Program-made: the position numbers and the translations under genes
The notes under the pieces: model-generated
Told to the model about the DNA's origin: nothing
The model's database searches: none
The model's input: the letters and a program-made list of their open reading frames with translations, nothing else
Assembly (NCBI RefSeq): GCF_033153115.1
Contig: NW_026889805.1
Location: 13,082,001-13,146,000, forward strand
Direction: 5' to 3'
Length of the DNA: 64,000 nucleotides
From: Saccostrea echinata
Taxonomy: Eukaryota
Shown: positions 16,951 to 58,089 of the stretch, piece after piece
How positions within the stretch are numbered: the stretch's first letter is position 1
How the letters are laid out: every line of letters starts with the position of its first letter

Positions 16951-17054
16951 CTATTTGGCCCTTGAAGTTGAACTTTCCTTCGGGTCCATAAATTTCTTTC
17001 CAGTAAAGTCTGTATAATTTTCACAATCTTTGATGGCAGAATTTGGTACCTGTG

Positions 17055-17129
<75 letters not shown>

Positions 17130-20100
17130 GGGGTGTAACTCTTCGGCTGTCAATTAATCTAATTTCTTTTGTTTCTTGTCAATAACTGACTTTAAATATT
17201 AAACAAACCTTTGTAAGAGGAGTGTAGCAGGGGTGATGGTGAACTTTGACTGGGTTATTGTGACGTGTATTATAACACATAAGGTACGCCCATCGCCGTC
17301 TGTCGGAATCATTTGGTCCGCTGCAGTGAAGCAGATTACAGTGGAAAATCAGGGCGTCCCCTAAAAATGGAAATATATCTTAACAGATCTTTATTACACC
17401 TAAAAATAGTATAAAAGTTCTTTTTTCAATTATTTTTCTTAAATGAAAGCAAATGATCATTGTTATTCGTGACCACTGTTACACACATATATAAAATCAC
17501 GAGTAAAACATAGATAGGAATTGGGCAATAATGATCTGAAAAGGTGATATAATAATTGCAATTTATGCAAATTACCCATACAGATTTTTTTTCAGTTATG
17601 ATAATTTCTATCCTCTCTTCTGAACAAAATGAATGACTTTGGGTTTTTAATATGAATATAATATGCAATAAATGAAACTTACCTGGGTCTAATTCTACAT
17701 ATACTAGGTCCAGTTTCTTTTTGAGTTCTCTAACTCTGTCAATGTCTGCCGCTGTCTGACCAGCTACCATACTGTGGTCAATTCGATCACATTTGTGTGA
17801 TCCCTTCAGAACCTTCCACAATATAGATTTATAGTAGTACATTACAAACAACGAAATCTTCGGATGACCAACAAGATTATGGTCGTGCACAGCAGAAAAC
17901 TAAATATAATAACCAGGGTTTTTTTATGTTGACATGTATGATAGAATTTCCTAGAAGTTTCACCTTCAAACAGCCATTACTTTTTTCACACTTATCCAAA
18001 GCCACAAACACTGTCAGCATTTCTGGGAAGAGACATCCATTTTTGTACCAATAACTAGATAATTTAAAAAGGAAAGTCTGTATATGTTTTAGGAAAATAC
18101 GTGGAATTCAAAGCTTCATTAACAATAAATATCTTGAACTCACACACACATGTATACGTTTCATATAAATCTAAAACAAAGAGGCAAGTGCAATACAAAA
18201 AATTAATCTAATACTAGGAGGAATTTAATTTTATGTAGTAAATGTTAGCACAGATTAAAGAGGACTAAAATTAAGCATTTTGTCTGCATTAAAACTGAGA
18301 GGAATGGGATGGTCGTCAATAATATTTTTTTTAATTTCCAGATATTTGGTCATATAAGTATTATACATATCTTTCATTTTTGACCTTAAAGTTTCTCTCA
18401 TAAAAATCTTTTAATTACAAAGATACATTACAAGATTCATTGATTGTTTTCCCAAGCCATTGTCTATATTCCTCATTATGATATTTTTCTGCTGTGAAGG
18501 AAAAACTTCAGACGTACTGTGCTACTAGTAACATGTATTCAAAAAGTTTTTAATTTTAAATTTTTTAAAAGTTCTGATGACTTTTTGAGAATACACAAGA
18601 TTTTCCAAAACCAATACCTGCCGTTAAGGAGGAACTTTAGAGGTACTGTGCTACTATATAGTGCTACTTTTTCTCAGGAAGTGATGTTAATCAAATGTGG
18701 ATTCTCAAAAATTCAAAAGAACATTTAGAAAATTTAAAATCACAAGATTTTTCCAAAATCAATAACATTAAAATATATAATTTTTCTACACTTTGTACAG
18801 TCATTCTTTACAATAAAATAAGATGGGCTTTCTGAAATCATAAGCAACAGCACCTCAATAAAACAATGTTTTATATTGTGATTGACCACCTACTTAATAA
18901 ATTTGCTTTAAAAAACAATCTGATTTAAAACACAAGTAGTCTGAAGTTGATATTAAAGGGATGCTGACAATATCTATGTAGTCCTTGGAGACCAGGTCTT
19001 CCAATACCCTTTTAAAATTAGATGGGCACTTACATTGCCCCTTTATTAGTGGATATGGTTTATATTCTTACGAAGCGGAATTAATTCAAAATCTTCAACA
19101 AAAGAAGAAACAAACCTGGTGTGGTCTGTTATTCTATTTTTAGATATATCAACGACGTTTTATTAATTAATAATAGTTGCTTTTATTCCTATGTCAACTT
19201 GATATATCCTTGTGAACTTGAAATAAAAGACACCACAGAGTTATCACATCCTTTTCTTATTCGGATGTTTTACTGACTGTATACATTAATGGCAAACTAG
19301 CACCTACACTATATGATAAACGAGATGACTCCAGCTTTTCCATCGTCAGCTTCCCTTATTTATGTAAAAATATTCATTATCACCTACATATGGTGTTTAT
19401 CTCTCCCAGCTGATTCGGTACGCTAGAGCATGCTCTACATGAATTTTTAAACTGTGACAAGCTACTGACACATAAGTTGATCTTACGAGATTTTCAACAA
19501 CATCTTTAAAAGTCGGAATTTTGCAAATTCTATGGTCGTTATAACAGCATTGTTTGCAAATACAACCTATAGCTGGATTGTATTTTACCTGACATGTTTC
19601 ACACCAATTGGTCGGCCATTGTTTTGACTACGGAATACTCCATTTGCTTGCTCAATACAGAGGGCTAATGACACGTGTTACCGTCGACAGGGGATACTTA
19701 CTCATCCTAGACACCTTATCCTACCTCCCTTTTTTCCAGGGGTCTGTTTTTTGCCCAGTTCACGATTTCTATTGTTTGCAGGATTTACCTGATCAATCAC
19801 TATTTGGTCAACCTGGCCCATTCAAAATTTTTACCACTGATTATTTTTACAACAAAATTTGCTATATCTGATCTGAAAAAAGATTTCTATTTACATAAAT
19901 AGTACATGTAATTAAAAGGTTTTTGATGTCTTTATATTACGTAGCATGCTTTTATATGTTCTTTTCTACTAAATTTTCTTCCCTGTTGTCAACAAAACTG
20001 CATTGTCCATTTTTCGCAGCATTCAAACCTTCACAAAATGTAATAACTGCAGGAACTTCTAAACGAAACTTTATTTTTGACTTTTTTAAATAAAAAATGA

Positions 20101-23100
20101 TCTAAAAGAGCTACTGGGCGATCCTAATATTGGTTCTACTATTTCTAGAGTTTATACTTCCTCCATTAACGATGGGGAGGACTTATTTTAAATTAACAAT
20201 TCAATCAAGTCAATTTATACATTGTTCTCATAATAATAACACTAATATTCATGTTTAATGTTCTTTCAATTATTTTTTCACACTTAAAGACTAATTTATT
20301 TCAGTGGTTAGAGCGTTTGCTCTAAAGTCGCAGAGTAAGGAGTTAATCCTTATGTCGCGGGTGTGAATCCATTTGCGCTACGTGGAAACCGGTCTTTCGG
20401 ATGAGACCGTATAAACCGAGGTCGCCTGTCAAAGTAGCTGTTGGCACGAAAAAGATCCCTCATTGCTCAAATGCCGAGTACAGATCTTAATTTGCAGCCC
20501 TTCATCGGCAAGTGGTGGATTCTCAATATGAGTGAAAAATTCTCGAATGGACGTTAAACAAACAAACCAAAAAAACTAATTTATTTCTAAAAAAAAAAAT
20601 AAATAAAAATAATAAGATTCCAATTCAGATCATATAATATGAACAGTATATGAATTTCCTATCGTTATAATGTCTTGCATTTATTTCTAATTCGTTTAAA
20701 ATATATTCGTAGATTGTATATTTATTATTAAGTCTAAAGTCTACCCGTAGTCTTGGTGCCACAAGAAAGTTCCCCCTGACTTGGCATTTTTCTGGATTAA
20801 CTTCCCATGGTAATGATAAACTTCGTCTCCTCCAAGTAACTAAATCAAATTTTTTAAAAAAAGTTATCTTTTTCTTAGGACATAAAACACAGATATAGAG
20901 TTATAGCGAGCGCAGCGAGCTTAATAGAATAACGTGTAAGAAAAGAGGAAAATCGGAATGACATATACGTCAGGCAAATTTTGGTGTGAAACCTTCCCAG
21001 AATTCCCCCACTACTAGGATTCCATGCCATAATGGCTAATATAAAAATCATATATAATATAAAAGGCATGCAGTTTTAATAGAGCTTAAAAGAAACAAAA
21101 AATAATTTAAAATTTCAAGGAACTTTTGGAAAATTTGAAATCACAAAATTTTACCAAAATCAACAACATAAAAACTTACGACTTTTCAACTTTATATACA
21201 ACCATTCCCCATGATAAATTAAAGTCCAGGCTTTTTGATATCATTTACAGCTGTCAGTATAACATGTAGGGAGAGTGCGAATTAAGTTTTTAGAACTTGT
21301 GCCCAATCCCACTGTATATATTTATTGCAATAAAATATTTCAAATCAGCTGTTTTTTCAATAAAAATGGAACTCGTAAATATACTTACCTTGTCATTGGT
21401 TATTTGCAAAATAATTTTGTTAAAAAACATTCGGCACTCTGAAGTCGATATTAAAAAGATGTTCGAGTTTCTGATTGACAATATATATGTGGTTTTTGGA
21501 GACCAGGTCTTCCAACAATCTGTTGGAATTCACATGGAACCAATTGCGCCCCGTTATTAGCAGACCTATTTTTTGTATTCATATGAAGTAGAATTTGTTC
21601 AAAATCTTATACATGAAAAAAAGAAAACACTTGCTGTGGCCTTCAAATCGACATTTAAATATATCGACGATGTATTGTCAATTAACAATGGTTATTTCCA
21701 TTCTTATGTCGATACGATATATCCCGGTGAGCTTGAGATAAAATATACCACAGAGTCTTACACATCTGTTTCATATTTGGATATTTTACTAGAAAAAGAC
21801 GTTAATGGTATTGTAACAACCAAGTTTTATGTGGTGACTTTAACTTTTCAACCATCAACTTCCCTTACTTATGTAACAATATACCTTCATCACCTGCATA
21901 TGGGGTTTATATCTCTCAGTTGATTCGATACGCAAGAGCATGCTCTACGTATGAGCAATTTCTAAAACGAGGTAAGTTATTGACAAACAAGTTGATGAAA
22001 CAAGAATATCAGTAGTCTCGTTTGAAGTCGTCATTTTGTAAGTTCTATGGTCGATACAATGACAATGTCAGCAAATACAATTTATCATTAAGTCATATGC
22101 TGACTGACTTTTTTCATACTAATTGTTAGGCCATTATTTACACATCGAATTGTCGACGGATTTTTTCCGTTATTTCCCGATCATGACAAGGAGCACACGG
22201 CGGGTGTGCCCGGTAGACATGGGATGCTCACTCCTCCATGGTACCTTATCCCACCTCTGATGTTTTAGAGGTCTGTGTTTGCTCTGCTCCAAAATTTGTA
22301 TTGTTTAATGGACTTTTGAGTTTGAATACTGTTCGTTGTCTCCGTACATTTCATTACAGCTACTCTACAATGTATTTCGTGAAATATTGCACTAGGCCTG
22401 TAGTTCTACCAGACGCTCGGCTGTCTCCGTAAATTCATGTGATGTCACATTCTAGACTGTGTCTCGTGCGGTTTGAAGTTTGAAGACGCGGATCAATGTT
22501 ACAAGTGTAAGCTATGTAACGGTTTTTTATGATACAACGGCGCTCGCCCCAACGGTCACACCGTAAAACATATTAGATAATTTGCATTGTTAACTAGGAA
22601 ATCTAAATTGCTAAAACGTCGGCATGTGAATTATGTGCTATCCCATGATGTTTTTCTAATTTCTTTTCTTCAATGAATTTACAATAGTAATGCCCTCTTT
22701 TGATAAATAATGTACTTTTTTAAAGTGTATTATATTTATCTATAGCGTTTTCTCTCTTAATTTTTTTCTAGTTTTTTAGTCCCCTAATCTAAATAATATC
22801 ACTGTGAATTCATGATATGAAATATCAGAAATATGATACCTTTTCCGCTGCATTGACCACTTTTTCAGATCTAGCTGCCATTCCTGTGACATCATTTCCG
22901 GGATGACACCACACCGTCAGATTAACCTCTCGTCCCAAACTGTCATCTACCTGTGTCAAAATGTCAACGATATCTGTGAGTTTTTCCCAAACAGATTCAA
23001 TTAATTCGTTTAATTCATGTTATACAAATCTGTGCTTCGTATTTAATCTACGTACCCTCATTTTATTGTTGACAACTTCTTCGGTATCTTCAAAGCATTT

Positions 23101-23641
23101 CTTTAGTTTTCGGACTTCTTCAGCATCAAAGAAGTTTCTTGAATAAATTGAGAAAAGAGAGCTTTTTTCCTTTTTAAATATGTTGCAATTATTTTGAATA
23201 CATCACAATTCTGTTTTTATGAGTTTTTGTCAAACTTACTTTATAATGATAAATCCATTGTCATTAAACTCCTTTAACCTCTCTTTTGTGATTTCAAAAT
23301 TATTTCCTAAAAATACAGAAACACTGTGTAATGCGCATGAATTATTCATTGGAATATTCAGCTAAAAATTATTAGTAACTAAACTTCACACTTTTATGAT
23401 AGAAACTAGAGACCATATATTGCTGTACTTTTTATATTGTGTTTACGTTTTCTTGATTCCTTACCATGTTGATGATTAACGAACGATCGATATGCATTGC
23501 TGTAGTTTTTATTATCGTTAAAAAACGTTATATAATCCACATATACTTACAAAATATCGTGGAAGGCGGTAGATATAACCTGCTTGGAGAGAACTTCCAG
23601 TCCTCTCTTTCTTTTTTAAGGATATTTTTCTTACCTGACAT
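16951..23641 (-). CDS. PhyH-family Fe(II)/2-oxoglutarate dioxygenase copy 1 (L-proline trans-4-hydroxylase/ectoine hydroxylase-like), ~277 aa
   Basis: Nine exons, all GT-AG and in phase: 23641-23635, 23306-23240, 23137-23056, 22950-22840, 20839-20745, 18054-17964, 17812-17683, 17360-17209, 17049-16951. Motifs [19 protein letters not shown] (HxD), [35 protein letters not shown] (distal His and 2OG-binding Arg). Confidence 0.92.
17058..17126. repeat. (TA)n microsatellite abutting the last acceptor of PhyH1
   Basis: TA run directly upstream (minus strand) of attcacag|GTACCA. Confidence 0.95.
18290..19790 (+). mobile_element. Degenerate Penelope-like retroelement RT fragment (PhyH1 intron)
   Basis: Frameshifted peptides [34 protein letters not shown] and LYDKRDD; same family as 21095-22353. 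Confidence 0.7.
20303..20574 (+). mobile_element. tRNA-derived SINE with Deu/Nin-like core
   Basis: A-box-like tcagtggttagagc, B-box-like gtgtgaatcc, core gtctttcggatgagaccgtataaaccgagg and an (AAAC)n tail. 13-bp TSD actaatttatttc at 20290-20302 and 20575-20587. Confidence 0.8.
21095..22353 (+). mobile_element. Penelope-like retroelement RT, 5'-truncated and frameshifted (PhyH1 intron)
   Basis: Peptides [52 protein letters not shown] and SYLDILL, i.e. PLE-type RT motifs. Confidence 0.85.
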
Positions 23642-23910
23642 ATCTACTGTCCTCCTGATATGCCTAAATACAATGTTGATATACCTTGCATATTGTCCAG
23701 CTATCAGCTGCGATGAAATGTATAAACATGTCCCAGTGAAGCAGTGATAATACGTATAAAGTACTATAAAATAAAGGTGTCCTAAATCTGAATATTTTTA
23801 GGCTACTACAAGTAATTTATAGCTTAAATTTTAGTACTTATCACTTTACTCTTTACACTTTTCCCGAATTAATCATTTTACAGTAGTATGATTCTAATCC
23901 CGCAAATAAT

Positions 23911-24480
23911 TTATTGTCCTCCGCTTTTGAAAAAGCGAGGGACATTAAGTCTCATTCGTCCGTCAGTCTGTCCATCTGTCACCTAACATTAAACTTTAAC
24001 CTTGTAATAATTTTTTAATGAGAGGAGATAAGGATTTCATATTTTACATGTACCTTACCTGTGACAAGACCTTTCCAAATATACTATGAATTTCAACCCC
24101 GGCACCTTGAAATTTGACCTATTTTTCAAAAATTGGTTAAAACTTCAGAGAATATATGGTATTCATATTTGACATGTGCATTACCTGTGACAAGACGTTA
24201 ACTATGACACCTTTCAGAAAGAACTATTACTTTTGACTTCATGACCTTGACCCTGAAGTTTGACATAATTATCGAATACTTTTAACTTTGGCCATAACTT
24301 TTGCTCCAGAGGAGACACGGCTTTTATATTTTTTTTCACATGTACATTACTTGTGACAAGACTTTCGGATTGTATTATGATTTTGGACCTCATGACCTTG
24401 ATCTTGAAGTTTGATGTAGTTTTGAGAAGCTTTAATCTTTGCCGAAACTCTTATCAATTCAATAATTTGTATCTTTTTTA
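23911..24480 (+). mobile_element. HINE-like element lying between the divergent PhyH1 and Gfo1 starts
   Basis: Terminal hairpin gtcctccgcttttgaaaaagcgagggac, GTCC/GTCT microsatellite, internal repeats with gtgacaagac (24061, 24187, 24353). Confidence 0.55.
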
Positions 24481-25470
24481 TGATGGACAGACAAAACAGG
24501 ACATACGAACAAGACATTTACAATATGCCACTAAGAACTGCATCCCAACTACTAAGGCACTAAATGCAAGAGACTACAATTCTTTGAATTTGCTTGTTTT
24601 GTCTTGGATTTCGGTGCTCCTTTACTTTGCTTTCAGGATTTTGTCAGATTAAAATTTATTGTCTTTTTATGAGAATATGGACTTTGATAATAACATGCAA
24701 GTGAAACTTAGAACAGAAAAATTATATCTTCAAAATATACCCCTTCAAATTAATATCCAGGCTTATGGAAACTCTCTTTTACTTTAGAAAGGTTAATAAA
24801 CACAAATCTTTTATACAAGTTTACTCTGGTAATATTGTTACTATGCAATCAGTTTTAATTAAACTATCCTTCCATCTTTTAAAAACATTTTAACATCAAG
24901 TTTTGTGTCATGAATAGTATTAAGTAATGTTAAAAATCCTTTAATGAATAAATTCAAATTCAAAGAATGCAATAATTGCGCTCTATTATGTACATCAATA
25001 TTTATTTCAAACAGCAAAAGAATTGACTAATAGGCTTCGTTTTATAACTTTTTGTTAATAAAATAGAAAAAACATCACACCTTCGTCTCTCATTGATTCT
25101 TAACCATTATATCCTTCCCCTATTTCAAGAAATATGTAGATCGCTTGATAATTGTTTGATGTTCAGAATAATGTAAGCATTTTAGAGAAATAATCATATA
25201 AGAAGAGTTTAGAACATAATAAATTCTTGATAAATCATACTTATACCAATTATTACCAAATCAGTCGAAGACTTTATATCTAGGGACTTTATTAAGAAAA
25301 TGCTGAAAAGATTTTTTTTATGTAGACCTCTGCGTAGATGCTGCAGAGCACTGGCCTTGAAATGCATATAAACATGCTATGCTTGGTGATGACATAATCT
25401 CCAAATGTAAAATAATAAGAGAAAAACAAACTATAAATGATAAAACATGAGTGTCCATTTAAGGCATATT

Positions 25471-25524
25471 TGGGTCGTCTTCGTAGAGACCCAACTATTT
25501 GAATCCTTGAGTGGTGTATAAATA
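25471..25524 (+). promoter_or_regulatory. Candidate Gfo1 core promoter (TGGGTCRTCTTC motif plus TATA)
   Basis: tgggtcgtcttc at 25471 is conserved as tgggtcatcttc at 36592 upstream of Gfo2. gtataaata lies at ~25516, before a 5'UTR exon ending at 25576 (aag|gttagt). Confidence 0.4.
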
Positions 25525-25662
25525 TTGTGCGAAACAAGAAACGGGAGATCGGCAGGAAACTACTGAGAAGAAAAAGGTTAGTATAAAAAATCTTTATTAA
25601 ATACATCTTATGCAAAATTTGATCACTTGATATGTATCGTTTTGATATTACTATAATTATAG

Positions 25663-38125: not shown

Positions 38126-38337
38126 TTGTTTTGTTTTTTTAATTTGCTGTCTTTGAAAGTAAGAAAATAATACAAAAGAAAATGAATGACTCGACATTTG
38201 TTATATTTTGATTTTTTATTACTATATGTAAATCTTGCAATGTTATTCTAGTACTGAGAATTACCTGAGAATAAAAAAAACATTAAAATGAATTGAGCTT
38301 TGTGTACTTTTTTCAATCATGTTTCAAGTTTAATTAA

Positions 38338-40428
38338 TCACACTTGTGGTTGTTTGAGCCAAAAGTCTTTTCCGGTGAAGTCGCTATAGTTTTCACAATT
38401 CATTATAGCCGAATTTTCAACCTGTAAAAGATGTGCAATGATAAGAAAAAGTTCAATCTAAAACAAGTAATTTGTTTCACATTAATAATTGAAAAGCACC
38501 TACAATATCGAGTGGAGTGTATCCTGGGTGTTTTTCGTGTGGACCGGGATCATTAGACGCTTTGTTATAAGCTATAACGAGAGCTCGTCTCATGTTCTTA
38601 CTTGTGTTGTCACTGCTAGTGTGAAGTACATTGCAATGGAAAAACAGGGCATCGCCTGCAAAACATGTTATTATACAGTAATCTCAAATTTGTCAGTATC
38701 ATCAATCTATTGTTGAAGTTTTTCATCGTTGAAAGTAATAATTTACAAAAAGATCAATTGTAATCACACATCCCTGACCTGCCTTCAATTCCACGTGCAT
38801 CAGATCGCATACTTTCTCAATCTCCTTGACTCGTTCTACGTCCGCGCCAGTTTGCTCCCCGACAATCAAATGGTCAATTCGTCCACATTTATGTGACCCT
38901 TTCAGAATCTTATTTGAAGGTAAAATGATTAACACAAGAGAATTACATTATGATCAAACCGAAGAAAATAATCATGTTCAAGACAAATGGCATAGACTAA
39001 GTAACTTGCAGATAGAAAACAACTTGCCTGCAAACAACCATTTTCTTTCTTGCAATCATCCAATGCTACAAAGACTGTCATCATGTCAGGATAGAGACAG
39101 CCGTACTTATACCAATACCTGGTTAAATATCGCACTACAGAGCATAGTACAGAACATAAATATCCGCTAATTGTAATATCAAAACAAAAACAGACTTACC
39201 CATAATCCTGGTGCCATTCAAAGGTACCTCCTACGTAAGGTTCCTTGGAAATTAATTTGGTGTGGTAATGGTAAACCTCTCCCCCTAGCAACTGGAAATA
39301 ATGGATTTATACCGATTTGTATATTGATAAAAAGATTACATTTACTTGTTTACTCACCTCTTCACAAGTCTTTGCAACTTTCTCAGAGCGTGCAACAATA
39401 CCAGTGACGTCATTTCCCGGATGCTGCCACAGGACCAGTTTTGGTTCTTTTCCATTCTTGTCTGGTCTCTGAAAAAATATATTATAACACAATAAAGTAA
39501 AAAATGGTCAATTCAAGCGTAAACACAAACTTAGCAAAATATGCTTGGACATTGCAAACGTACTCCATACTGGTGTTTTAGAAGTTCTGGGTTTTCGACG
39601 GCTTTCTCCACTTGAAGCAGCTCTGTCTCACTTAATAAGCCTCTGAAATCAAATTATTGTTCAGAATCATTAACATCTGGGCAACGAAATGAGATGCACT
39701 TACATAGTCTACTAGTATATTCTCTCTGAAAATCAATGCTGCAGTCTGTTTTTGTGTAACCCTTTCATTGCTTTCTTCTTAAGAACCCTCTCCACACTGC
39801 ACACTAAAGAGTTCTGATTCTATGGTATTTTTCTGCAATTAGAGTGATCTGCTCTTGGATCTAAATTCCAATAAATAGAAATTTACAGTATATTACCTAA
39901 TTTGTAATCAATACAAGTATTCTTCATATTTCAAAGGGCCAAGATAAATTAATTGAACACATTATCTCCATGTATTTTCTTCATGGAAGTAAACAACTGT
40001 GATTTCTGTTCACTGATACTGTGTTGTGTTTGAACATTTTTCCCGGGGGGTAAATGCCACGTACCATATATTAAAAATTAAATAGATAAGCCCAATATTT
40101 ACAACTTTATTCAATATAATTTTCTCGATGTCAAAAAAAACATTTTGCACTGGTGTATAGAGGGTCCTTAAAGGAAAATAGAAATTAAAAGCATCCACAT
40201 TTGATAAATGGACGCGCTACAAATTACATGTATATACCTTACAATAATGCATCCATCCTCACTGAAGCATCGCTTTGCTTCATCTGTTATGGTCAGTGAA
40301 TTGTTTTCTATGTTATATTCTGTAAGCAATAAGACATGTCAATTTCTAGTTTGTCAATTCGAATTAAAAAATATGACTTTAACATAAAGGGGTATTCTAA
40401 CTAATTAATTACCTGCAACTTCCATCAT
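38338..40428 (-). CDS. PhyH-family Fe(II)/2OG dioxygenase copy 3 (divergent paralog), ~278 aa
   Basis: Exons 40428-40413, 40319-40238, 39642-39564, 39468-39358, 39291-39200, 39118-39028 (GC donor), 38908-38779, 38655-38504, 38421-38338. Motifs [10 protein letters not shown] and [24 protein letters not shown]. Confidence 0.9.
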
Positions 40429-45577: not shown

Positions 45578-45719
45578 NNNNNNNNNNNNNNNNNNNNNNN
45601 NNNNNNNNNNNNNNNNNNNNNNNNNNNNNNNNNNNNNNNNNNNNNNNNNNNNNNNNNNNNNNNNNNNNNNNNNNNNNNNNNNNNNNNNNNNNNNNNNNNN
45701 NNNNNNNNNNNNNNNNNNN
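45578..45719. other. Assembly gap (N run)
   Basis: 142 Ns. Confidence 1.
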
Positions 45720-46422: not shown

Positions 46423-49400
46423 TCAGTCATCATCCAACTCTCTTACATACGCTAAGGGGAAGTAACCATTCTGGGAAAAAAGAAAAAGTATTGCCATTAT
46501 TTGAAGATTTTACATTACCAGAATTTTTAAATCAAATGTTCTTTAAAAGATATTATCTATTTAGATATAGCTTATGCTGCTGATTAATTTCAGATAATAT
46601 CAAGATGAAAAAAATGAAGAAAATTGACAAACCTTTCCTGAGACACAGTGCTCTCCCTTCCACCAGCCTTTGTCACTTCCTGTTTTACTAACAATGGCCA
46701 CTCTGTCACCGCGACACAGGGACAGCTGAGACGTAGCAGTGGCTGCATAATCGTACACTGCTTCTGCGTAGCCCAGAATTCGTGCACCTGTGAAACACAT
46801 ATCATAGATTACATGTACCAAGGTTAATACTTCTGTTAAAAGTCTCAAGATTGGAAAATGAATCAACCCAGATTTATCATCAACCCTTGACTTACTAGCC
46901 CCTCCTCCAGCCTGAGATTTGAAAGGAAATTTAAGAGTTGTATCCACCCCTGGAAAACTATCTGCTAGTGAGTTATCCTGATAAAACTCCACTAATTCCT
47001 GTAAAAGAAGGATTCCATGATCAGATACAGAGTCGGGGATTAATCAGAAAGTCAAAAAATACTTTTTTTTCCAGAAAATGGTGCTTTAAAATTCAAATTA
47101 AGCTCATTAACTAAATTGGAGCTATATCAAATATGGTACACTAAATCTCCTGTTAGCTTCCTATACATGTCTCACCTTCACTGTTTTGAAGTTCTTGTCC
47201 ATACTTAATCTATAGAATCCCTCTTCATCCTTGCGAACTTTAATATGCTGTACAGAATTATTTCTAAAATCAAATGTGGGATGCATTAAGGTAAACTTTA
47301 CCTGCATCTTTGTGGGATTTGAATAGTCTGCATGCAGTCATATGACAGTCACATGACTAGAGTCACGTGACATGATACTAGCTGAAACTGGTATCAAAGG
47401 GTGCATGCTTCTCTTTGTACTTACACATCTAACAGCAGACATCAAGAGGAAACAGAGGCCATCCCTAGTGAAACAGACTACACAATTATTACCCTAAACT
47501 TTGAGGCTTCTTATTGTTAATTTGATTCTTTTGAAATGAATCTAAATGAATTTATAATTTCTTTTTTAAAACTGTGCCAGTGACTTGAATTCTCTGTGAT
47601 AGGGATGCTGTGTACTATGGATGCCCCCTGTTTGATTTTGACTTCAGAACTAGGACAGCCTATGAGGACAGCCTTGAGCATGCCAATATACTCACAGGTA
47701 GAGAAGAAAAGAATTTAGTATCAGCTAAATAAAACAAGCCTTCAGCATTCTTCTCCACTCTGATGTGTCGAACCTGGTTATCATACCTACAATACACGTG
47801 GAGGTCATGCAGAATAGCTGTATATAACCATAAAGTCTCATGCAAGATTCAGAACTATATACAACATGTCCGAAATTGTTATTTACAACCATGCATAATA
47901 CTGATAAATACTATAATTTTTTACATGTCTATTATAACATTCTAAGGTAAATGTTTGAATAGAGCACTAATGTTTTTTTTTCTAATTCACTTTCTCTAAT
48001 CTCCATCTGTGGACAACAAAAAGTTCCTACATTTGTTATTTATACATTAACTGCAAGCAATAGTCATTTCTCAACATTCCAAACTTGTTTAAATGAGAGA
48101 TAAAATTCATTTCAAAATCAAATAGAATTCACTTTGGAAAAATACCAACAAAGGCATACAAGAATAGTTATTTAACTTGAACATAAAGTGAAACATGTCA
48201 ATCATAACAAAATATTGCCAAATAAACAGATCAAATAAGAAATTTTAAAAAAGGATGGAGATAAACTAACTGTTAACAATTTTACACCCCACCCCCCCTC
48301 AAAAAAAATAAATATAGCAAGAAAAATAATGATAAACAAGATGACATTCAAAAAATGTTTCTGCATATCTAAAACAAAATTCTACTCATACAGTAATTCG
48401 AACATAACACTTTACCATCTATAATCCCCTTCCCTAAAAACATTTATTTAAAATGTATACAAACTAGAAGTTTCTTAATGGAATTCATTCCCCCTGTTGG
48501 ACACACACTCGGTAACCTTGGCCCTGCTGTTCTTTAGACTGTTTTTAAGGGGGCCGACTAGGGGGTTTCCATTGTACAATACTTAGTGCAGTATATTGAA
48601 ATAAAGCACATTTACCCTTTATTGCAATTATTTCAACATAATTTATCAAATTCAACAAAATTAAGAAATCGAGATGTTTTCTGATTTTTAAAATGATTTT
48701 TCAAATAATAGGTAGATTGTTGCCATTATTGTGTGTGTTGTCAAGTCATGAAAAACTGAAGTTCCTTAGGAGAGGGTTATAAAAAGTTTTACAAAAAGTA
48801 TAAAATATATGCTCTTAAAATTGTTAACTAAAGATTTGAATATTTTCTATATAAATCCTAAAAATGTGTCATTTCTTATAGTACTTGATGAAAAGAAGAT
48901 TTTGACAATTTGAGATGCCCCCTTTGGAAACCAGATGGTAGAATTGTGTGTTTCTTACAAATAATGCACAATATAGTATTGTTCATTACATATTATAAAT
49001 TGAACAAAAAGTGTATTACATTTTTTTTTAATAATTTGTTTAGAAGTGTGAAAAAAGCATTTTATCTATTGTAAACGTAATAGTATTTTGAGATGGTCCC
49101 TAAAAAATAACCAGACGAAAGATTTTCCTCAAACATTGCATGTATACTGAAGTCACTGTAGGCTATACATGGTATAAAAGTAAAGAGTTCCTCTATTTAA
49201 TTTTTAAACCCAAAAAAACAACAACAGTCAGCTCCCTTTAATTTTTTCCTTCTTTATTCCCGTGAAAAATTTGACTTCATATTGTGGGCCAATCCTAAGC
49301 TCCTAAGGATCATGACTTTTGATTTAACACAAGTCATAAATCTTTTAAGATGTAATAAGAAAAAATGACGAAGTATAGTTTACTTTCAATTTTTTGATTT

Positions 49401-52400
49401 TTTTCTCCTGATGAAAAATGTTAACAATATGAAACTTTTCAGTAATAGTATTAAACTTAAGGTAATTCAGAAAAAGTCAAAAATCTTTATTGATGTAATC
49501 AGAAAGCATGATGAAAGATAATTAACTCTTGATTTTTTTAATGTTTTCAATTGATAAATAATGTAAACAATTTTAAACTTTTCAGTAATTAAGGTATATG
49601 TATCTGGTAACTATGTTTACCGAATACTCAGAGAGAGTTCGCCTCTCCTGCCAGGGTTCTCACTGACTCGAATTAAGAACGTCCCATTTGGCATGTTACC
49701 AAGCCTACGATTGGCAGTTTCTCTGTCCATTGGACCCACAAACCTAAATAAAGTAAAACATATTGCATTCTATTTCAATGGTTTTTGCAAGGAATTGATT
49801 CTAATTAATACAAATCATTTTTTTTTAATCTAGAATTTGCAATGAATCTTAGTCAATGTAATTTCTAATGGATAATTTTTCCCTGTTTGAATACTTTTAA
49901 AGCTGTATGATCCCATCTTTTTGATCTCAGATAAAAATTATTTACCACCATCATTCATTTACAGTGTAAGTTCCTATTTTTCCAGAAATTACATACTCTA
50001 GTTCACATCTGTTCCAGAGAAAAAGAAATTGGAAGGTTAAAAAAAATTATCATTGTGGTTCTACAATGAATTATTCAACTGTTGATAATACACATTCTCA
50101 CTAAATAGTTTCACTTCAATCGTAAACATGAGATTTCACGAGTGCATATTAATGAGTTGAGGAAAGCTTGTTAATTTGACGAAATTGCGAGACAAGAGAT
50201 GAAGAGCAATGACCGAACAGTCTACTTAATTGAGTAAACTAAATTCTTGAACATGGCACGAGGTAAATAAATAGGTGCTAAACTATGAAATTCTACCCAG
50301 TAAACAAAAAATAATACACGTTTTTCCTCGTCATACTTTTGAAAGGTCGCACAATCATTCTCTAAAGATCTTTATGCTGAATATTCATAGTTTTTGTTTG
50401 CAAGCAAAGAATTATTTCTTTAAATACAACTTAGGCACAAAACATAAGATAATTGGAAAGGATATTTTTTGTTATTTGAATTTATGTTAAACAGACCTAG
50501 ACGATAATATTCATAAGTAAACTAGATGTGTCGACAATGCCCCCACAAGCAGCCAAAATTTAAAATGTGATATTTAGTTTTAAATTTGTATTCAAACTTG
50601 ACCCATATTTTCTGGTAAAATACCTGCATATGCAATTTCAACCTTTTACAAATATCCCTACAAAAGTTAGAGAGTAGAAACTGAAAATTTCTTATTTTTT
50701 CTAAGTTCAAGAGGGATAACTCTGTCAAAAATCATTGGACCACGATGAAATTCAAATTTGACCTCTATTTTCTGGTATAATACCTGCACATGCAATTTCA
50801 ACTTTACACATACATCCCTACAAAAGTTAGAGAGCAGAAAATGAAAATTTCTTATTTTTTTCTACGTTCAAGAGGGATAACTCTTTCAAAAATCAGCGGA
50901 CCATGACCAAATTCGAACTTGATCTGCGTATTCCTATGACATATCCACGTCAAATTTGAGTTGAATAAGTGCAACTGTTGCAGAGATAATGAACAGAAAG
51001 TGAATGATGACAGAATGACAGAACAGGGTAACACTATATGCCCCGGCCAATGGCGGGGGCATAAAAATACTCAACACTTAGGGACCATACAGCTTTAAAT
51101 CTGAAACTCTCTTGGTTCATGAATTCATACTTCATGACAAACAACACTGCAGAGATATGCCTGACATACCATTTATAGACATTGAGCTGACTGGACATTC
51201 CATCGTTATCCACATTAACATAGGGTACATTGTTAGCGGGGGAGTGAGGACGGGGAGGGGATACAATACTGGGTGTTCCGTTCTCATTTCTAGGCTTTAT
51301 TTTCACATCCAAATACGACGGCTTTCTGCGGATCTGATGACAATAAAAAGCTGGTTACAAACATGTATATCACATTCATATATATAAACAAGCCCATCAA
51401 TACATACGAGCTCAACTTGCAGTTGACATTCAAATGAAATCTCAGCAGCAAAATACAATAAATCACAGTCTGGTCACCAACACACATAAACAAAGGAATT
51501 ATGCTGATACATCCATCAAAATGGTGTATTTTATTCATAACAGAGCTGGAGGTACATATATGTCACTGTGTGTGCCTTTTAACAGTTTCTAACACAGAAA
51601 AATTGGGGAATAGTTGTTGTTGGGTTGTTGGATAGGAATAATTTCAATTAATGTCTGTAAAATGTTTATTAATACAAATAATTCACATGCTGAAAAGGGG
51701 AAGGGGGGTGATAATACTGCTTAAGCTTCATGCTTTCTCAAAAAATTCAATTAAAAAAACCTACCAAACTGCATTACCATCATACGCTTTATTTTTCTGT
51801 TTCAAAAACAAATTCAGCAAAGTATTTTGGTTTACTTTGTTTTAAAAGTATGACAGCATCCAAATATCAATTTGCAACTCCAGACACAGTTACTAGATTG
51901 ACTTAACAGATATTTAAGTGCCACAGAACATGTTATCTTACCCTTGGATTTTCCTCTTGGACAAGTTGTGAAGGGAACCAGCCTTCATCTCCATTCAGCA
52001 GTCCCTAAAAATTGTAAAAAGATGTTTACCAACAAAATTAATCCTTCAACAGCTTACAGACGGCTATAAAAGTGTTCCTATCAAAAGTGTAACTATAGCA
52101 ATTTAATTTCTGAAATCAACTTGATGATTTTTGTTTTACAGGTATAATTTCAATGTTGTAAACACTTACCTTCCACCACTGAGCGTCATTATTCAGTAGC
52201 TTTATCACATCATCCTTCTCAAAGCGCAAGGCTGGGCGGCCGGCCCCAGGGTTAGGATTGCCATTGTAATTACAAAGAGCTCGGACCTGCCCTGTAAGGT
52301 CACATATATTTACATTCAACACCATAAAACAATGTGTACATGTGTAAGCTATATATTGAAGGAATACATATGAATCTGAGAGGTTGCATTCCATTCATAC

Positions 52401-55400
52401 AAAACAATAAAAGAACTGAAGATAAGTTAACCATGCTTCCCACAAAACCTTCTTCTAGGAAACAGTGAAATCAGGTGAAATATACTCATTTGTTCAAATT
52501 AAGGAAACCAAAGAGAAAATAGCATGAGTGATGAATATAGCAAGCCTATGATACTGATGTGTTTTAATGCAAAGTGTGAACAAAATAAAATAAATGTGTA
52601 CATAAGTATGGATGTACACTTTACATCAATCATCGCAAAGAACTACGCACGCTAACTCTCGATTCCCGCCTACATTTTACACCCATTTAATTTAATACTA
52701 ATGGCAATTTGGCTGTAAAATCTTTGTTGAATGCAAAGAACAGTTCAATGGTAATTGACGGATAATTTAAATTCCAGTGTTAAATAGTTAATTACCCCTA
52801 ATTCCAGCTCTTTAAATAAGGGGGGTAGACGATATTTTTCATTGAAATCCGGCTTTAAAGCATCACCACATTTTAAAATATTCTTGGATGTGAATAAATG
52901 TTCCTTAAATCTTTTCTTATGTTTTACTCATATAAAATTAAACATATATTATTAATAAAATACAATGTTTTATTTGTAAACTCCTTTAAAATTGGTGAAA
53001 AAATAAGCATTTTGGTAGTTTTTTGTCTGTAAACATATGTTCCCCCCCGTGAAACACAAAAAGCTTTGGTATGAATTTGTGAAATGACAGTCCATATTAC
53101 CTGTAAAAAGGAATTTTTGTTTCACGGGGGGGAAAAGATGTTTTAAAAATATTTTCCGTTTTCCGTTGATTTCTATAGTGAAAAACACAAGTTTTACCAA
53201 AATTATAGAGTTATCTCTCTTTGTTTTCCCAAAGAAGTAATGTTTTATGAAAATTCATATAAATATCTATATAGATATGAAAAATCGTTCAAATGTGTTA
53301 ACTTTTGAAAATTGACTCGGAGGTAGGCGGGAGAACAATACTATCGTTCGCAGTTCTTAAAGCAAATTAAGTGGAAAACTGAAAACTTGATATACTATGT
53401 GCTGGAAAAGATGATTTCATGCTATGCATTGAGAAGCATGAATTTGCGCAATAAAATTTAAGTACTTGGCACTTGGTAGCTTAAAAACAGTTTTAGGTAG
53501 TATTCTTTAAATTCTTTAGCACATAAGCATCTTATACATGTTGTCAGTAAATTTATTCACTCTAATGAACACCTACTAACTTCTATCTGATATACGAACT
53601 TTTACATCAAAATCTGTCCAAAACTTTGCAAGACTAAAGACTACAAGACAAAAGGAATCAAAAGTCCCATCAAATTTATCAGTAAATAAAATAAAAATTG
53701 TAACACCTACTATTACGCTTTTTTTTTATTTATTCAAAATATTGACAAATTTGATACTAGGTATGTCAAATCCTGTGGTACAGACAGAAACCTTATGTTG
53801 ATTTACTCCCATCCTATCAATCAGTGGTTATTCATTAACTCTAAACAGTTAAATAATGATTCCCGATCAGATTTTTCAAATGTACAAACATGTTAAACTT
53901 CTCTATACCAGGAACATAATGGGTTGTCTCAGAATAGCCAAACCCTACAGGGAATTTTAACATTTAGAAAAAGCTACATTTTGCAGGGAAGATGGAGGAA
54001 AGAAAAAGTGGAAGAACTTACTATGCTGTATATGAGTGGGCGACCTCCCTACAATGTGTAATGAAGTGGAAAAAATGTCAAATGTATGAACAAACTCCAC
54101 GTAGAAAGACAAATGTGGAATAAATGAACAATTGTGCAGCTAGCTTGTTATGCAGAATATGAACAATTCTGAAACATTCTATGCTGTAAACAGGCTAAAT
54201 TGGAAGATTTATTTCACATACCTGTGAAAAAAATTCTTAAAATTGTCAAAATTAACATGTAAAAAATTATTGCTAATAATCATCCTTCCATTATCAAAAT
54301 CATCTACTGTAATTACACATCAATATATATATATATATATAATTATATATATTTGATGCCGTAGAGTTATTGTAACATTCTAGAAATACCAACATTTTTA
54401 AATTCTAAAATATTTATAAAAGTAAATAATACTGTCAATAAAATCATGCCCAATAATCAGAGGGAAAGTCAGGTTTAATCTATAGAGGAAATCTGTATTC
54501 CTTTGATGTACAAAGAGGCAAAGATTTGAATTTTCTCTTGAAGGGAGGTTGATATTCTTGATACACAATATCATCAAGAAATGAAAAATTTATTATTTGA
54601 AGAAAAAAAAAATTCATTCACAAAACATTCTAGAGTTTCTGCTTAAATCATGCACTAATATCTGCTTTAAGCCCCTTTTACAAACCAGAAATCTATACCT
54701 ATAAAACAACATATGCCATTAACATGCAGCATGTACACAAAATGAATAAACACTGCCTCCCTGAAATGAGTACAGATTTGGCCATGCCATTTTGAATATA
54801 CCAGTAAGGAGTACTGAAAAAGACATGACAATCATACCCAGGACTGCTAAGTAATCATGCAATCAGTCATGCAATAAAACGACTTACGTTCATAAATTAT
54901 ACTAGTGGTTCGTCTACTCTCAAAGCGTGATATTGAACTACTATCCCTGATTGATAGTGATCTACGACGTTCATGAACCACATCCAAAGTTCTAAATGTT
55001 TCTGCACAAACCAAGCATAAAGAATTGTTCTAGCATAGAAATAAAGACTATAATGACTAGTTAATGCTCAATTTTGCATTGTGTGTACAAAGAGGATGCT
55101 CTTTCAATATGCATAATACACATTTTCAGGTAAGATGATATGAAATGGCAATCTAGGTGATAAATTTTCTTTAAAAAATGTGCAGAATTCACCCTCTGAG
55201 TGTTTCTATGTAGTGTGTAACATAATCTGAGGGGAAAACTCATGTGTAGCATGCTGGGAAGTGATGATTACAGTCAACAACAATACAGTCTTGGAAGGGA
55301 GAGGCCATTATGGTGAACAGCTTACCTATCACTCGAGCTGGAATGGGTGGGACTGAAAAATAAAAAGAGGAAATTTCACAAAAAAATCTATATGGCTAGG

Positions 55401-58089
55401 GATCCAAGAAAACTTTACTATATCCAAGATATCTGAGAATTTGCAATATCTGTCTTCATCCTAAACAAGTTTTACTGTAACCTTTCATTTCCATTACATG
55501 TATTAAAGTTCTGGATAAACATTGGTTCAAGGGGATTTAATTTCATTGCTGAAGAAAAAACATCAAAAATATTTTGTGGGGGGTGGGGGGGCATAAATTC
55601 ATGGGTCTCTTCAGACAAAAAAAAAACAATGAAAATTAGACCCCTTCAAAAATTAGTGATTTCATGGTAATCACATGTCAAAATCCTTTCAATTAAAAAG
55701 TGGTGTTATTAGGTACATTATAACCTGTTGACTTTGAGAATGTAACATAGAGGGTAGAATTTTTCCTCCACAGGTGAGCCCTCAGATAAATCTTACCTCG
55801 ACTGCCGGCATTTGGAGGTTTGCCAATGCATTCCTTATGTACAGCGATATCACTTCCTGGATCTGAAAACACAAACAAACCAGGAAGTAACCTGTGACAG
55901 TTCTACTATTGCAGGGTAGATTGTATAGTTAGAAAAATCTTATTCTCTTCCTTCAATTGAATGCTGGTATGTCAGGTTATCACAGTAAATCAATTTTTGT
56001 AGATTTATCTTCAAAAGTACTCTTAACCCTGACACTTTTGGCAAAACAAACAAAGCAAAAAAGGAAAAAAAAATATTCAAAATTTAGTCATACCTGTACA
56101 CTTGTAACCCTGGAAAAACACACCTCTGGAAAAAAGTCAATGAAAATGCTAATAAAAACAGAAATCAATCTTTGAAAATACACTTAACAAAAGCTTTTTT
56201 TTTCTTTTAGTTTCAATATACAGCATTATAATTTTTCCCCTTTAAAATATGCAGTTTTGACTTAATACTAATGAAAAATCAACACTGAGAATACAGTAAT
56301 TACCTCCACTAAGGATTATACCTGGTATATAAGGGTGGGGTGGGAGTGAAAATATGATGATAAAAAGGTTTTGGCTTGATAATGAGAAATAACAAAATAA
56401 AAATTTAAGAATAATACTTATTGCTTACTTAAAGCAACATCATAATATTTATCAAATTAACATTATACTGATGTTATTCTCAAAGTATCTGTGAAAATAT
56501 TTAAGTATCAATTTGTATTTACATGCAGTAATGATAAAAACATTTATTTTTAATATACCGGTAAATATTTCTCCCTCTCTGTTCCCAAGAAATTCAACAG
56601 AACTATTTTCCAACAAATTTAAGGAGTTATCTCCCTTTGCACATTCTTACATGTACCCTATAACCTAAACCCCATCAAGCTAACTAACAAACTAAAAATT
56701 AGCATTTTAATTATGTTGTACCACCAATCATGAAACAATATACCAAATCAAATCTGAATGGAATAAATGTATGCAGTTATTAGGAAAAACAGGAAATTTG
56801 TGCTAGTAGAATTAGACATGCACTGGACAGAGAGAGTGATTATTGTAGGACACCGCTAAACATTTGTTTAAATAAACAATACTGGGTTTATAAGCTTGTT
56901 GTCTAGGAGTCTGTATATATACACTGTACCTCAGAAGTTTATGACACACACTGCATTCAGTGGGCTGTTCAAATGTGTGCATCACATAATTTATCCCTTG
57001 TGGAGGGGAAGCATTCTCTCTGGAAATAAAAGAGAACATTGTTCAATTGAAATATATTTATGAATTACTGTATTTCCTATAACTTCTATGATAATATTAG
57101 CAAAAGAAAAGATAAATTACTCTATACATGTACCTTCTCCCTATTTAACACTGAGAAATTACTTAAAAATGCATTTGAAGTGGTGAAGCACATAAACAAA
57201 TTTTCGAAAAATCATTTATCAATTTGATAGATATATGGAGGTAAGTGCTGCAAAATAAACATCATTTTACCAACTAACTTCTTAATAATTAATTATTTTT
57301 TTATTTTATTTTATTTTTAATACTTTATCAGTTAAAAAAAATAATAAATCCAGATTTAATCATCAGAAAATAAAGTGTTACTACCACCTTGTAAATTACC
57401 AGGTGTAATTTTCATGTTTTTCATTATCATGAACAATTGGTACTGCTTCCTTTGGGTTGTATCTCATTATATAACATTTGACAATAAATTCATTTTCATT
57501 AAACAGAAATTCATAGGGGAAAAAAAATCTTCAAAAATGATCAATTCCTTAATATACAGCTATTATGCTGATGTCTTCTTTAACTACTTAACAATAAATA
57601 TATTTCACTGTTAATGAATCAAACTATTGAAATATACTGCTTCTAATAACAATCTACTAAGTGTATATTAGTGATGGGAATCGGTAAAAATTTTATATCA
57701 ATGATTGGGATACCGATCTAACTAATTATGGATTATAATTTGTCTATCCGTCTGCAGCATTACCATACTCAAATAAGTTAAAAGATAAGGTGCTGCTGGA
57801 AATATATGGCTTAAAAAATATTACGTTTGTAAAATAAAAATATAAACCGATTCATGGGAATAAAAATTCTGTAATCGAGCGCTTGGATTATCCCAGCAAT
57901 CAACTGATTTTCGATTATAATCGAATATTGGAACACCACTAGTGTATACAGAATTTATAGTGTTATTTTAGATACATACAATGCCAGTTTTATTGCATCG
58001 ATCCATTTGGCCCTCATATCCTCTGTTTTGGCATAGAATGTAAATGCATTTGAGCCATCTTTCTTTGCCATTATAAATGAACTGGTCCA
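46423..58089 (-). CDS. VAV: Vav guanine nucleotide exchange factor, 3' part (end of PH, C1, SH3, SH2, SH3); CH/DH exons lie beyond the right edge
   Basis: Exons: 58089-57980 (PH, FYAKTEDMRAKWIDAI); 57019-56930, 56125-56094, 55862-55797 (C1, CSVCHKLLRGVFFQGYKC...HKEC); 55352-55326, 55001-54888, 54048-54022; 52291-52170, 52004-51942 (N-SH3); 51333-51170; 49743-49621 (SH2, GTFLIRVS); 47786-47696 or 47263-47176; 46998-46896; 46787-46633, 46470-46423 (C-SH3, GYFPLAYV...DDD*). The domain order is diagnostic of Vav. Confidence 0.92.
47176..47263 (-). CDS. VAV: Vav SH2 alternative exon B (mutually exclusive with A)
   Basis: tag|A NNSVQHIKVRKDEEGFYRLSMDKNFKTVK |gtgaga; 88 nt, phase 2 to 0; homologous to exon A. 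Confidence 0.8.
47696..47786 (-). CDS. VAV: Vav SH2 alternative exon A
   Basis: tag|G YDNQVRHIRVEKNAEGLFYLADTKFFSSLP |gtgagt; 91 nt, phase 2 to 0. Confidence 0.85.
48545..49242. mobile_element. TTAA-flanked MITE in a Vav intron
   Basis: ttaaggggggccgacta ... agtcagctccctttaa. Confidence 0.5.
50519..51067 (-). mobile_element. HINE-like element with ~140-bp internal repeats
   Basis: aaactagatgtgtcg...atgcccc and terminal hairpin atgccccggccaatggcgggggcataaaa; repeated tccctacaaaagttagagag...gaaaatttcttattttt. Confidence 0.65.
52638..53360. mobile_element. MITE with imperfect TIRs
   Basis: aagaactacgcacg...tcccgcctac mirrored by gtaggcggga...cgttcgcagttctt. Confidence 0.6.

Follow-up and report, generated by a model that had tools for sequence, protein, structure and literature searches.

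Animal genomes rarely contain clusters of non-homologous enzyme genes that serve one pathway, and a genuine bivalve example would therefore merit biochemical follow-up. One animal example is the vertebrate EEVS/MT-Ox pair for gadusol, two adjacent, non-homologous genes that are conserved across vertebrate lineages and biochemically proven. A comparable juxtaposition of unrelated enzyme genes lies in the 64-kb stretch G000:C56:13082001-13146000 of the pteriomorph bivalve Saccostrea echinata (hereafter the window, meaning the whole stretch that was analyzed; ~33% G+C, with spliceosomal introns, in an assembly of 923 Mb). Here, three genes for PhyH-family dioxygenases (PhyH1 to PhyH3) alternate with two genes for Gfo/Idh/MocA-family dehydrogenases (Gfo1 and Gfo2). 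In contrast to EEVS/MT-Ox, the adjacency appears confined to one bivalve lineage. An earlier note on this DNA had read the locus as a co-regulated two-step pathway, perhaps acting on a cyclic amine or osmolyte. We instead consider it likely that the adjacency is a lineage-specific juxtaposition followed by one tandem duplication, with no pathway link shown, and that the arrangement is probably unusual but incidental among ordinary enzyme families.

A second point of comparison is kanamycin biosynthesis, where the 2-oxoglutarate (2OG) dioxygenase KanJ and the NADPH reductase KanK act sequentially on an aminosugar (PMC5533434). The logic of a dioxygenase followed by a nicotinamide-dependent reductase is the same, but the system is a bacterial antibiotic pathway and can serve as an analogy only. 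A PDB search with the PhyH orthologue did not bring up KanJ at E ≤ 0.001.

The exons of the PhyH genes were located by translated comparison of three minus-strand regions, after which each acceptor and donor was read. Single exons were used for database searches, and the joined models were used locally for translation, identity, substitution rates, BLAST against fetched sequences, and trees. The spliced models gave open frames in all five genes (Table 1), with canonical splice sites except for a single GC donor. Read from left to right, the order is PhyH1(-), Gfo1(+), PhyH2(-), Gfo2(+), PhyH3(-), and neither the list of open reading frames (ORFs) nor a similarity search of the window revealed a further gene or gene relic between them. 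Elsewhere in the 64 kb there was no PhyH relic in the flanks and no third Gfo copy or pseudogene beyond PhyH3. These models bear out the initial impression of five intact enzyme genes of two families alternating without an intervening gene, and they show two or more non-homologous enzyme genes side by side with no gene between, which is the physical half of what defines a metabolic gene cluster. The divergent spacing, put at ~1.6-2.0 kb from ATG to ATG, also held, at 2022 bp for PhyH1-Gfo1 and 1560 bp for PhyH2-Gfo2 (head to head). At the other end of Gfo2, its stop codon and that of PhyH3 are 213 bp apart (38125-38338), and the Gfo2 3' untranslated region (UTR) extends to 38192 or beyond, so that the two convergent genes probably meet or overlap at their 3' ends.

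Each PhyH gene has nine coding exons, the first consisting of the ATG and one to four more codons. Exons of 7/67/82/111/95/91/130/152 nt are common to PhyH1 and PhyH2, and the last exon alone differs (99 versus 111 nt). PhyH3 has exons of 16/82/79/111/92/91/130/152/84 nt and the same intron phases as the other two. Its donor after exon 39118-39028 (39027-39028) begins a GC-AG intron (CAG/GCAAGT), while the same intron has GT in PhyH1 and PhyH2. The Gfo genes have a first coding exon of 467 nt and a second of 670 nt (Gfo1) or 682 nt (Gfo2), and their single intron splits the same Arg codon in both copies (MF/R/YHAG). The Gfo domains are carried by long ORFs at 25663-26184 and 26242-26955 in one copy and at 36761-37312 and 37364-38125 in the other.

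At the protein level, PhyH1 and PhyH2 are 82% identical and Gfo1 and Gfo2 are 79% identical, while PhyH3 shares 50-54% with PhyH1 or PhyH2. Nonsynonymous divergence (dN) was nearly equal in the PhyH1/PhyH2 (0.116) and Gfo1/Gfo2 (0.118) pairs, and synonymous divergence (dS) was saturated or high in both (1.7-2.0 and 0.7-0.9, respectively). Combined with the shared exon structure, these values imply a single old duplication of a two-gene unit of which both copies were kept. The earlier suggestion that the pair was duplicated as a unit is thereby upheld by exon sizes (identical, last exons aside), intron positions, and near-equal dN. The ratio of dN to dS (omega) came to 0.06 in PhyH1/PhyH2 and to 0.13-0.17 in Gfo1/Gfo2. 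All four genes have been kept and are under strong purifying selection.

In a tree of Gfo proteins, Gfo1 grouped with a full-length protein from a related species (P0004, 94% identical), and Gfo2 was sister to both; the related species has a separate Gfo2-like protein at ~90%. This topology makes the duplication older than the split from the related species, yet confined to this lineage. Scallop Gfo genes were duplicated independently in the same tree. In the PhyH tree, one pteriomorph subclade comprised PhyH1 and PhyH2, PhyH3 with Pinctada FSP39_019307, and ten scallop genes that grouped together. Judging from sequence comparison, PhyH3 is an older paralogue of PhyH1 and PhyH2. The course of events would then have begun when a Gfo gene (PF01408 + PF08635) became the head-to-head neighbor of a PhyH gene in a local array of the lophotrochozoan "L-proline trans-4-hydroxylase-like" type. 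A segment of ~11 kb with PhyH and Gfo would have been copied once in tandem, long ago, leaving PhyH1 opposite Gfo1, PhyH2 opposite Gfo2, and the older paralogue PhyH3 at the end.

Linkage in other species was judged by contig identity and locus tags, with each annotated protein cited on a single contig. PhyH genes were drawn from the best 120 matches to a Mytilus protein and Gfo contigs from a separate exon search; a profile of diverse PhyH relatives used earlier had yielded thousands of bacterial proteins and almost no animal names. Among these best 120 matches, no PhyH gene shared a contig with Gfo in any of five bivalve species. The best named protein matches came from bivalves. Pinctada imbricata is the nearest annotated relative among the matches (~70% amino-acid identity), and its Gfo (FSP39_016423) and PhyH (FSP39_019307) are on two different chromosome-sized contigs, of 65,244,353 bp and 67,305,679 bp, with locus tags differing by ~2,900. 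This PhyH is the PhyH3 orthologue (P0401, 71% identical). Three scallops gave the same result: Pecten maximus (four Gfo copies, 60,076,705 bp; PhyH, 55,138,983 bp), Ylistrum balloti (four Gfo copies, 2,285,443 bp; PhyH, 3,659,541 bp), and Mizuhopecten yessoensis (Gfo, 2,016,160 bp; seven PhyH genes on five other scaffolds). The PhyH genes of these scallops are the co-orthologue clade of PhyH1 to PhyH3. The contigs of Mytilus edulis were 90,587,198 bp for Gfo and 108,102,362 bp for PhyH, which belongs to a different PhyH subclade. Conservation of the adjacency beyond the lineage was thus not found, and from contigs and tags the arrangement appears unique to this lineage, an outcome that the earlier note had named as counting against its own proposal.

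The two families also differ in how widely they occur. The PhyH subfamily is widespread, with members in molluscs, a brachiopod, an annelid, nemerteans, and a sponge, whereas this type of Gfo was seen, among the named matches, in some bivalves and krill only. This contrast suggests that the PhyH dioxygenases work without this Gfo in many animals. Within the 923-Mb assembly, a profile search found just two occurrences of PF08635, both in the window. A profile of PhyH exon 7 recovered nine genes of the subfamily: three here, two more on the same contig (C56) near 4.2 Mb, two on C4, and a single gene each on C25 and C16. Further Gfo/Idh/MocA genes were located on C47, C45, and C54, and no further adjacency between these and the other six PhyH-subfamily genes was found in the assembly. 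Three DUF1772 (Anthrone_oxy) exon matches were observed at C15:3471204-3486080, with no match to the exon-7 profile there.

The assignment of the proteins to the PhyH and Gfo/Idh/MocA families stands, given their Pfam matches, full-length relatives, and catalytic motifs. Single PhyH exons matched PF05721 weakly (19-30 bits), and full-length relatives 45-47% identical to PhyH1 scored 129-132 bits. All three PhyH translations contain the HxD...H iron triad (WHQD ... LLHCS or VLHTS) and the 2OG-binding Arg (RRW or RRA), and H11 and R22 were invariant in the exon-7 alignment. The nearest solved structures were GriE leucine 5-hydroxylase, further small-molecule hydroxylases deposited as "phytanoyl-CoA dioxygenase", human PhyH, EctD, PHYHD1, and MysH. 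The presence of GriE, EctD, and PHYHD1 in this set agrees with the likeness to free amino-acid and ectoine hydroxylases that had been pointed out before.

The Pinctada PhyH3 orthologue aligned nearly full length with the L-leucine 5-hydroxylase GriE (PDB 5nch; related 7dt0/7e01/7dzz) at E = 7e-22. The same structure was the first match of the exon-7 profile, and the HxD...H Fe(II) triad and 2OG-binding Arg are common to both. However, the overall alignment is that of a remote relative (81 bits), and bacterial relatives of the PhyH subfamily occur in sugar or uronate, not amino-acid, neighborhoods. EctD (TIGR02408) belongs to the same Pfam family and its profile matched in part; many database relatives are named "ectoine hydroxylase". 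Yet full-length (bacterial) PhyH relatives scored 66-80 bits against a TIGR02408 cut-off of 336.5 bits, and the PhyH proteins read WHQDYGYWY in place of the EctD signature WHSDFETWH. Orthology to EctD or proline 4-hydroxylase was rejected because scores fell far under the NCBIfam equivalog cut-offs. The PhyH proteins are best described, from these comparisons, as an uncharacterised subfamily that is neither EctD nor a proven proline hydroxylase, whatever automatic names say. The literature search brought up no relevant work on bivalve proline or ectoine hydroxylases. Most likely, the PhyH proteins would hydroxylate, or oxidatively deaminate, a small polar metabolite with Fe(II), 2OG, and O2, as expected of the family whose triad and Arg they carry.

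Against PF01408 (cut-off 24 bits), Gfo1 scored 55 bits and Gfo2 62 bits; against PF08635 (cut-off 22.5 bits), the scores were 131 and 135 bits. Both translations show Rossmann GxGxxG-like and EKP motifs (GAGAINFG and VEKPL). Orthologues were 62-70% identical in Pinctada, Potamilus, scallops, and Mytilus, and 48% identical in krill. NCBI names the bivalve orthologues after "uncharacterized protein UNK4.17" of fission yeast, and a literature search on UNK4.17/PF08635 found passing mentions of the name and nothing relevant. No member of this Gfo subfamily appears to have been characterised. Searches returned no close solved structure (best E = 1e-7) and no NCBIfam equivalog. Partial NCBIfam matches were to inositol 2-dehydrogenase, UDP-GlcNAc 3-dehydrogenase, and levoglucosan dehydrogenase, in keeping with an enzyme that oxidizes or reduces a secondary alcohol group in a sugar or cyclitol. 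Considering the family and its bacterial neighbors, the most likely activity of the Gfo proteins would be NAD(P)-dependent interconversion of a secondary alcohol and a ketone, with a sugar-like compound or a cyclitol as substrate.

Bacterial relatives offered a separate view of whether the two families belong together. The closest ones to the bivalve Gfo orthologues in Planctomycetota were 44-45% identical (a protein from a Planctomycetales metagenome-assembled genome). None of the 25 closest loci with a bacterial PF08635-type Gfo had a PhyH gene beside it within the available flanks of up to 10 kb. The neighbors were instead a GH4 glycosidase, GlcNAc 2-epimerase, FGGY sugar kinase, and sulfatase. 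The PhyH subfamily has thousands of bacterial relatives at ~50% identity, including 48-52% to a Gemmataceae protein, and we clustered the neighboring ORFs in 80 metagenomic loci. Gfo/Idh/MocA tied as the commonest neighboring family (9 of 80 loci, 8 of them recovered by direct BLAST), and xylose-isomerase-like TIM barrels came next (8 loci). Since these bacterial phyla carry Gfo/Idh/MocA genes in great number, 9 of 80 represents weak enrichment only.

Five of the loci (L128, L132, L139, L141, and L142) had the same layout, with LacI and Gfo/Idh/MocA pointing one way and, divergently, a xylose-isomerase-like TIM barrel, PhyH (at ~10001-10750 in L132 and L142), cytochrome c, and a PQQ dehydrogenase pointing the other. 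As in the window, a member of the same PhyH subfamily (~45-50% identical to the animal proteins) lies by a Gfo/Idh/MocA gene in partly divergent orientation. The differences are that this Gfo is of another subfamily, with a PF02894 C-terminus and ~25% identity to the window Gfo, that the TIM-barrel gene lies between Gfo and PhyH, and that the neighborhood makes up about a tenth of the sampled loci. A second recurrent PhyH context (L096-L134) had UxaC, a mannitol-dehydrogenase family protein, aldo-keto reductase, NAD-dependent epimerase, and a GntR regulator. Co-location of bacterial homologues, which the earlier note had suggested looking for, was absent for the PF08635-type Gfo in the 25 closest loci and present for some PhyH genes beside the other Gfo subfamily. 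These contexts are a real but modest indication that certain bacterial proteins of the PhyH subfamily act on sugar-like compounds in partnership with a Gfo-type dehydrogenase. They also suggest a sugar or uronate substrate for a PhyH family that is usually auto-named "ectoine hydroxylase". A cyclic amine or osmolyte, as first proposed, found no support. The bacterial neighborhoods of both families point to sugars, uronates, or aminosugars instead, and our guess at the substrate shifts toward sugars on this basis.

Expression was assessed with four sequencing runs aligned to the window stretch (X1, X2, X3, and X5), which are presumed to be RNA. About 23% of the sequence words of 32600-38200 occur in such runs, as would be expected from a content of mainly Gfo2 mRNA. 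Mismatch-free contigs covered the Gfo2 coding exons in all four runs, intron 37240-37443 was spliced out in contigs of X3 and X5, and the 5' UTR exon of Gfo2 ends at 36694. One X2 contig joined 32673-32756, 32928-32995, and 35207-35266 of PhyH2 with minus-strand GT..AG ends, that is, three exons across two introns (joints 32756/32928 and 32995/35207). The latter joint spans a 2.2-kb intron and fixes the position of the ATG exon at 35213-35207. Transcription is thus seen for PhyH2 as well as Gfo2. Contigs of the two genes occurred together in X2, and X1, X3, and X5 had Gfo2 only, a distribution that cannot rank or measure co-expression. Some 1.4 kb separate the observed 5' ends of the PhyH2 and Gfo2 transcripts, more than in a classical bidirectional promoter shared by two genes. 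When the two divergent intergenic regions were compared as DNA, no similarity or common element was found beyond the start of the Gfo coding sequence.

Two further observations concern the region between PhyH2 and Gfo2. An X1 contig joins 35983-36194 to 36754 onward across a 559-nt gap with minus-strand GT..AG ends, at a depth of 3.3 and with 29 nt on one side. This joint implies a minus-strand transcript from inside the first coding exon of Gfo2 toward PhyH2, which could be an alternative long PhyH2 leader or an antisense RNA. Positions 36351-36403 are a short dispersed repeat, to which many unrelated contigs in all four runs match at 90-95% before diverging into other sequence.

How far, then, do these results favor an incidental arrangement over a functional one? 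Several of them weigh against chance. Strong purifying selection has preserved the two genes in each copy of the unit, which is likelier if their functions are linked, and transcripts of PhyH2 and Gfo2 were both present in X2. Gfo/Idh/MocA shares first place among the families that flank bacterial PhyH genes in the sampled loci, and in the rearranged locus L140 an orthologous Gfo (55% identical) is kept even though its PhyH is only ~58% identical to the others. An unlisted PhyH paralogue may lie beside Gfo in the five bivalves, where the evidence consists of contig identity and tags for the best matches. Metabolic clusters in plants are typically lineage-specific, so non-conservation alone does not exclude function. 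All of this would be compatible with a functional two-enzyme module in this lineage only, with PhyH and then Gfo acting on the same small molecule under co-regulation from the divergent region, which we consider possible but unlikely. In chemical terms, either PhyH would hydroxylate and Gfo would then oxidize the new alcohol, or PhyH would deaminate oxidatively and Gfo would reduce the ketone, on the KanJ/KanK precedent (PMC5533434). The module would have been duplicated and have diverged toward a second substrate. Judging from the bacterial contexts, the compound acted on would be a sugar, uronate, aminosugar, or cyclitol rather than a cyclic amine. Such a module would account for a head-to-head geometry kept in both copies since the old duplication, and it draws support from the conserved PhyH/TIM barrel/Gfo-Idh-MocA/LacI neighborhoods of some bacterial relatives and from the carbohydrate enzymes (GH4, GlcNAc 2-epimerase, FGGY kinase, and sulfatase) around the bacterial PF08635 genes. 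Nevertheless, adjacent animal genes duplicate together irrespective of function, and a genome-wide scan meets some adjacent enzyme pairs by chance. The Gfo beside bacterial PhyH is of a different subfamily, the true PF08635 relatives had no PhyH neighbor in 25 of 25 loci, and the abundance of Gfo/Idh/MocA genes reduces what their proximity to PhyH can tell. Transcript 5' ends set well apart, intergenic regions without a common conserved element, and the lack of linkage in Pinctada, three scallops, and Mytilus, as far as contig identity shows, speak against a module as well. With relatives unlinked in five bivalves and in 25 bacterial Gfo loci, the co-regulated two-step pathway of the earlier note did not find support. 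The stronger version, a plant-like lineage-specific animal cluster in which PhyH and Gfo were joined for a co-regulated two-step conversion of a sugar-like, aminosugar, or cyclitol compound and duplicated for a second substrate, strikes us as decidedly doubtful. If true, such a bivalve pathway cluster would give a function to the lophotrochozoan "proline-hydroxylase-like" PhyH expansion and to the PF08635 Gfo family.

Inheritance of the adjacency from bacteria would be another route to the same layout. Planctomycetota relatives are unusually similar to both proteins (Gemmataceae for PhyH, Planctomycetales for the bivalve Gfo), as would be expected if both genes came by horizontal transfer of a Planctomycetota-like neighborhood and their adjacency were an operon relic. 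In both trees, however, the animal sequences formed one well-supported clade apart from bacteria, which makes a recent joint transfer unlikely. Krill was sister to bivalves in the Gfo tree, with protist-like sequences next, and several animal phyla have members of the PhyH family. Neither the sampled bacterial loci nor, as far as contig identity shows, the other bivalves have the two genes side by side, and the coding sequences contain spliceosomal introns, one in Gfo and eight in PhyH. Joint co-transfer from Planctomycetota was rejected on the basis of the animal clades and is very improbable. We also considered that a false duplication or chimeric join in the assembly might have created the alternation. 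A single run of N occurs in the window (45578-45719), away from the cluster, and the two units differ by ~20% in protein, with saturated dS and unalignable intergenic DNA. Moreover, the related species has separate Gfo1-like (94%) and Gfo2-like (~90%) proteins, and RNA contigs matched Gfo2 and PhyH2 specifically, without mismatches. An assembly artefact is scarcely credible in light of these differences. We therefore return to a lineage-specific juxtaposition with one tandem duplication, for which the analysis supplies exact gene models, selection on the duplicated pairs, expression of PhyH2 and Gfo2, and indications that linkage is absent in other bivalves.

Table 1. Genes, exons, and intergenic regions of the PhyH/Gfo locus and its right-hand neighbor, in window positions
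Feature	Position	Strand	Description
PhyH1	16951..23641	-	277 aa; open spliced frame, GT-AG at every intron
PhyH1 exons	23641-23635, 23306-23240, 23137-23056, 22950-22840, 20839-20745, 18054-17964, 17812-17683, 17360-17209, 17049-16951	-	last exon includes stop
Divergent intergenic region, PhyH1 ATG to Gfo1 ATG	23642..25662	.	2021 bp; from gene models
Gfo1	25663..26955	+	exons 25663-26129, 26286-26955; intron 156 nt; 378 aa; open frame
PhyH2	29340..35266	-	coding 29340-35213; 281 aa; open frame; 5' leader seen to at least 35266
PhyH2 exons	35213-35207, 32995-32929, 32757-32676, 31890-31780, 31660-31566, 31296-31206, 30172-30043, 29748-29597, 29450-29340	-	35213-35207 is the ATG exon
Divergent intergenic region, PhyH2 ATG to Gfo2 ATG	35214..36772	.	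1559 bp; holds Gfo2 5' UTR exon and dispersed repeat
Gfo2	36773..38125	+	exons 36773-37239, 37444-38125; intron 204 nt; 382 aa; 3' UTR to at least 38192
PhyH3	38338..40428	-	278 aa; open frame; intron phases match PhyH1/PhyH2
PhyH3 exons	40428-40413, 40319-40238, 39642-39564, 39468-39358, 39291-39200, 39118-39028, 38908-38779, 38655-38504, 38421-38338	-	GC donor after 39118-39028
Vav-like signalling gene	46600-57039	-	SH3 + C1 exons; right boundary of cluster

The genes that flank the locus are not enzymes, with an unassigned membrane protein on the left and the Vav-like SH3/C1 gene on the right. Three segments (18700-19070, 21100-21580, and 28650-29080) resemble one another when translated and appear to be pieces of a single retroelement-like repeat. 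PhyH1 introns contain two of them, and the third lies in the interval from Gfo1 to PhyH2; a Pfam search with two ORFs from these pieces gave no domain. Long (TA)n-type microsatellites occur at 17058-17129, in the last PhyH1 intron, and at 28541-28612, ~0.7 kb downstream of the PhyH2 stop in the interval between Gfo1 and PhyH2. From 58931 to the window end at 64000 there is a satellite with a 42-nt unit, in ~124 copies at 80% match and with strong strand skew.

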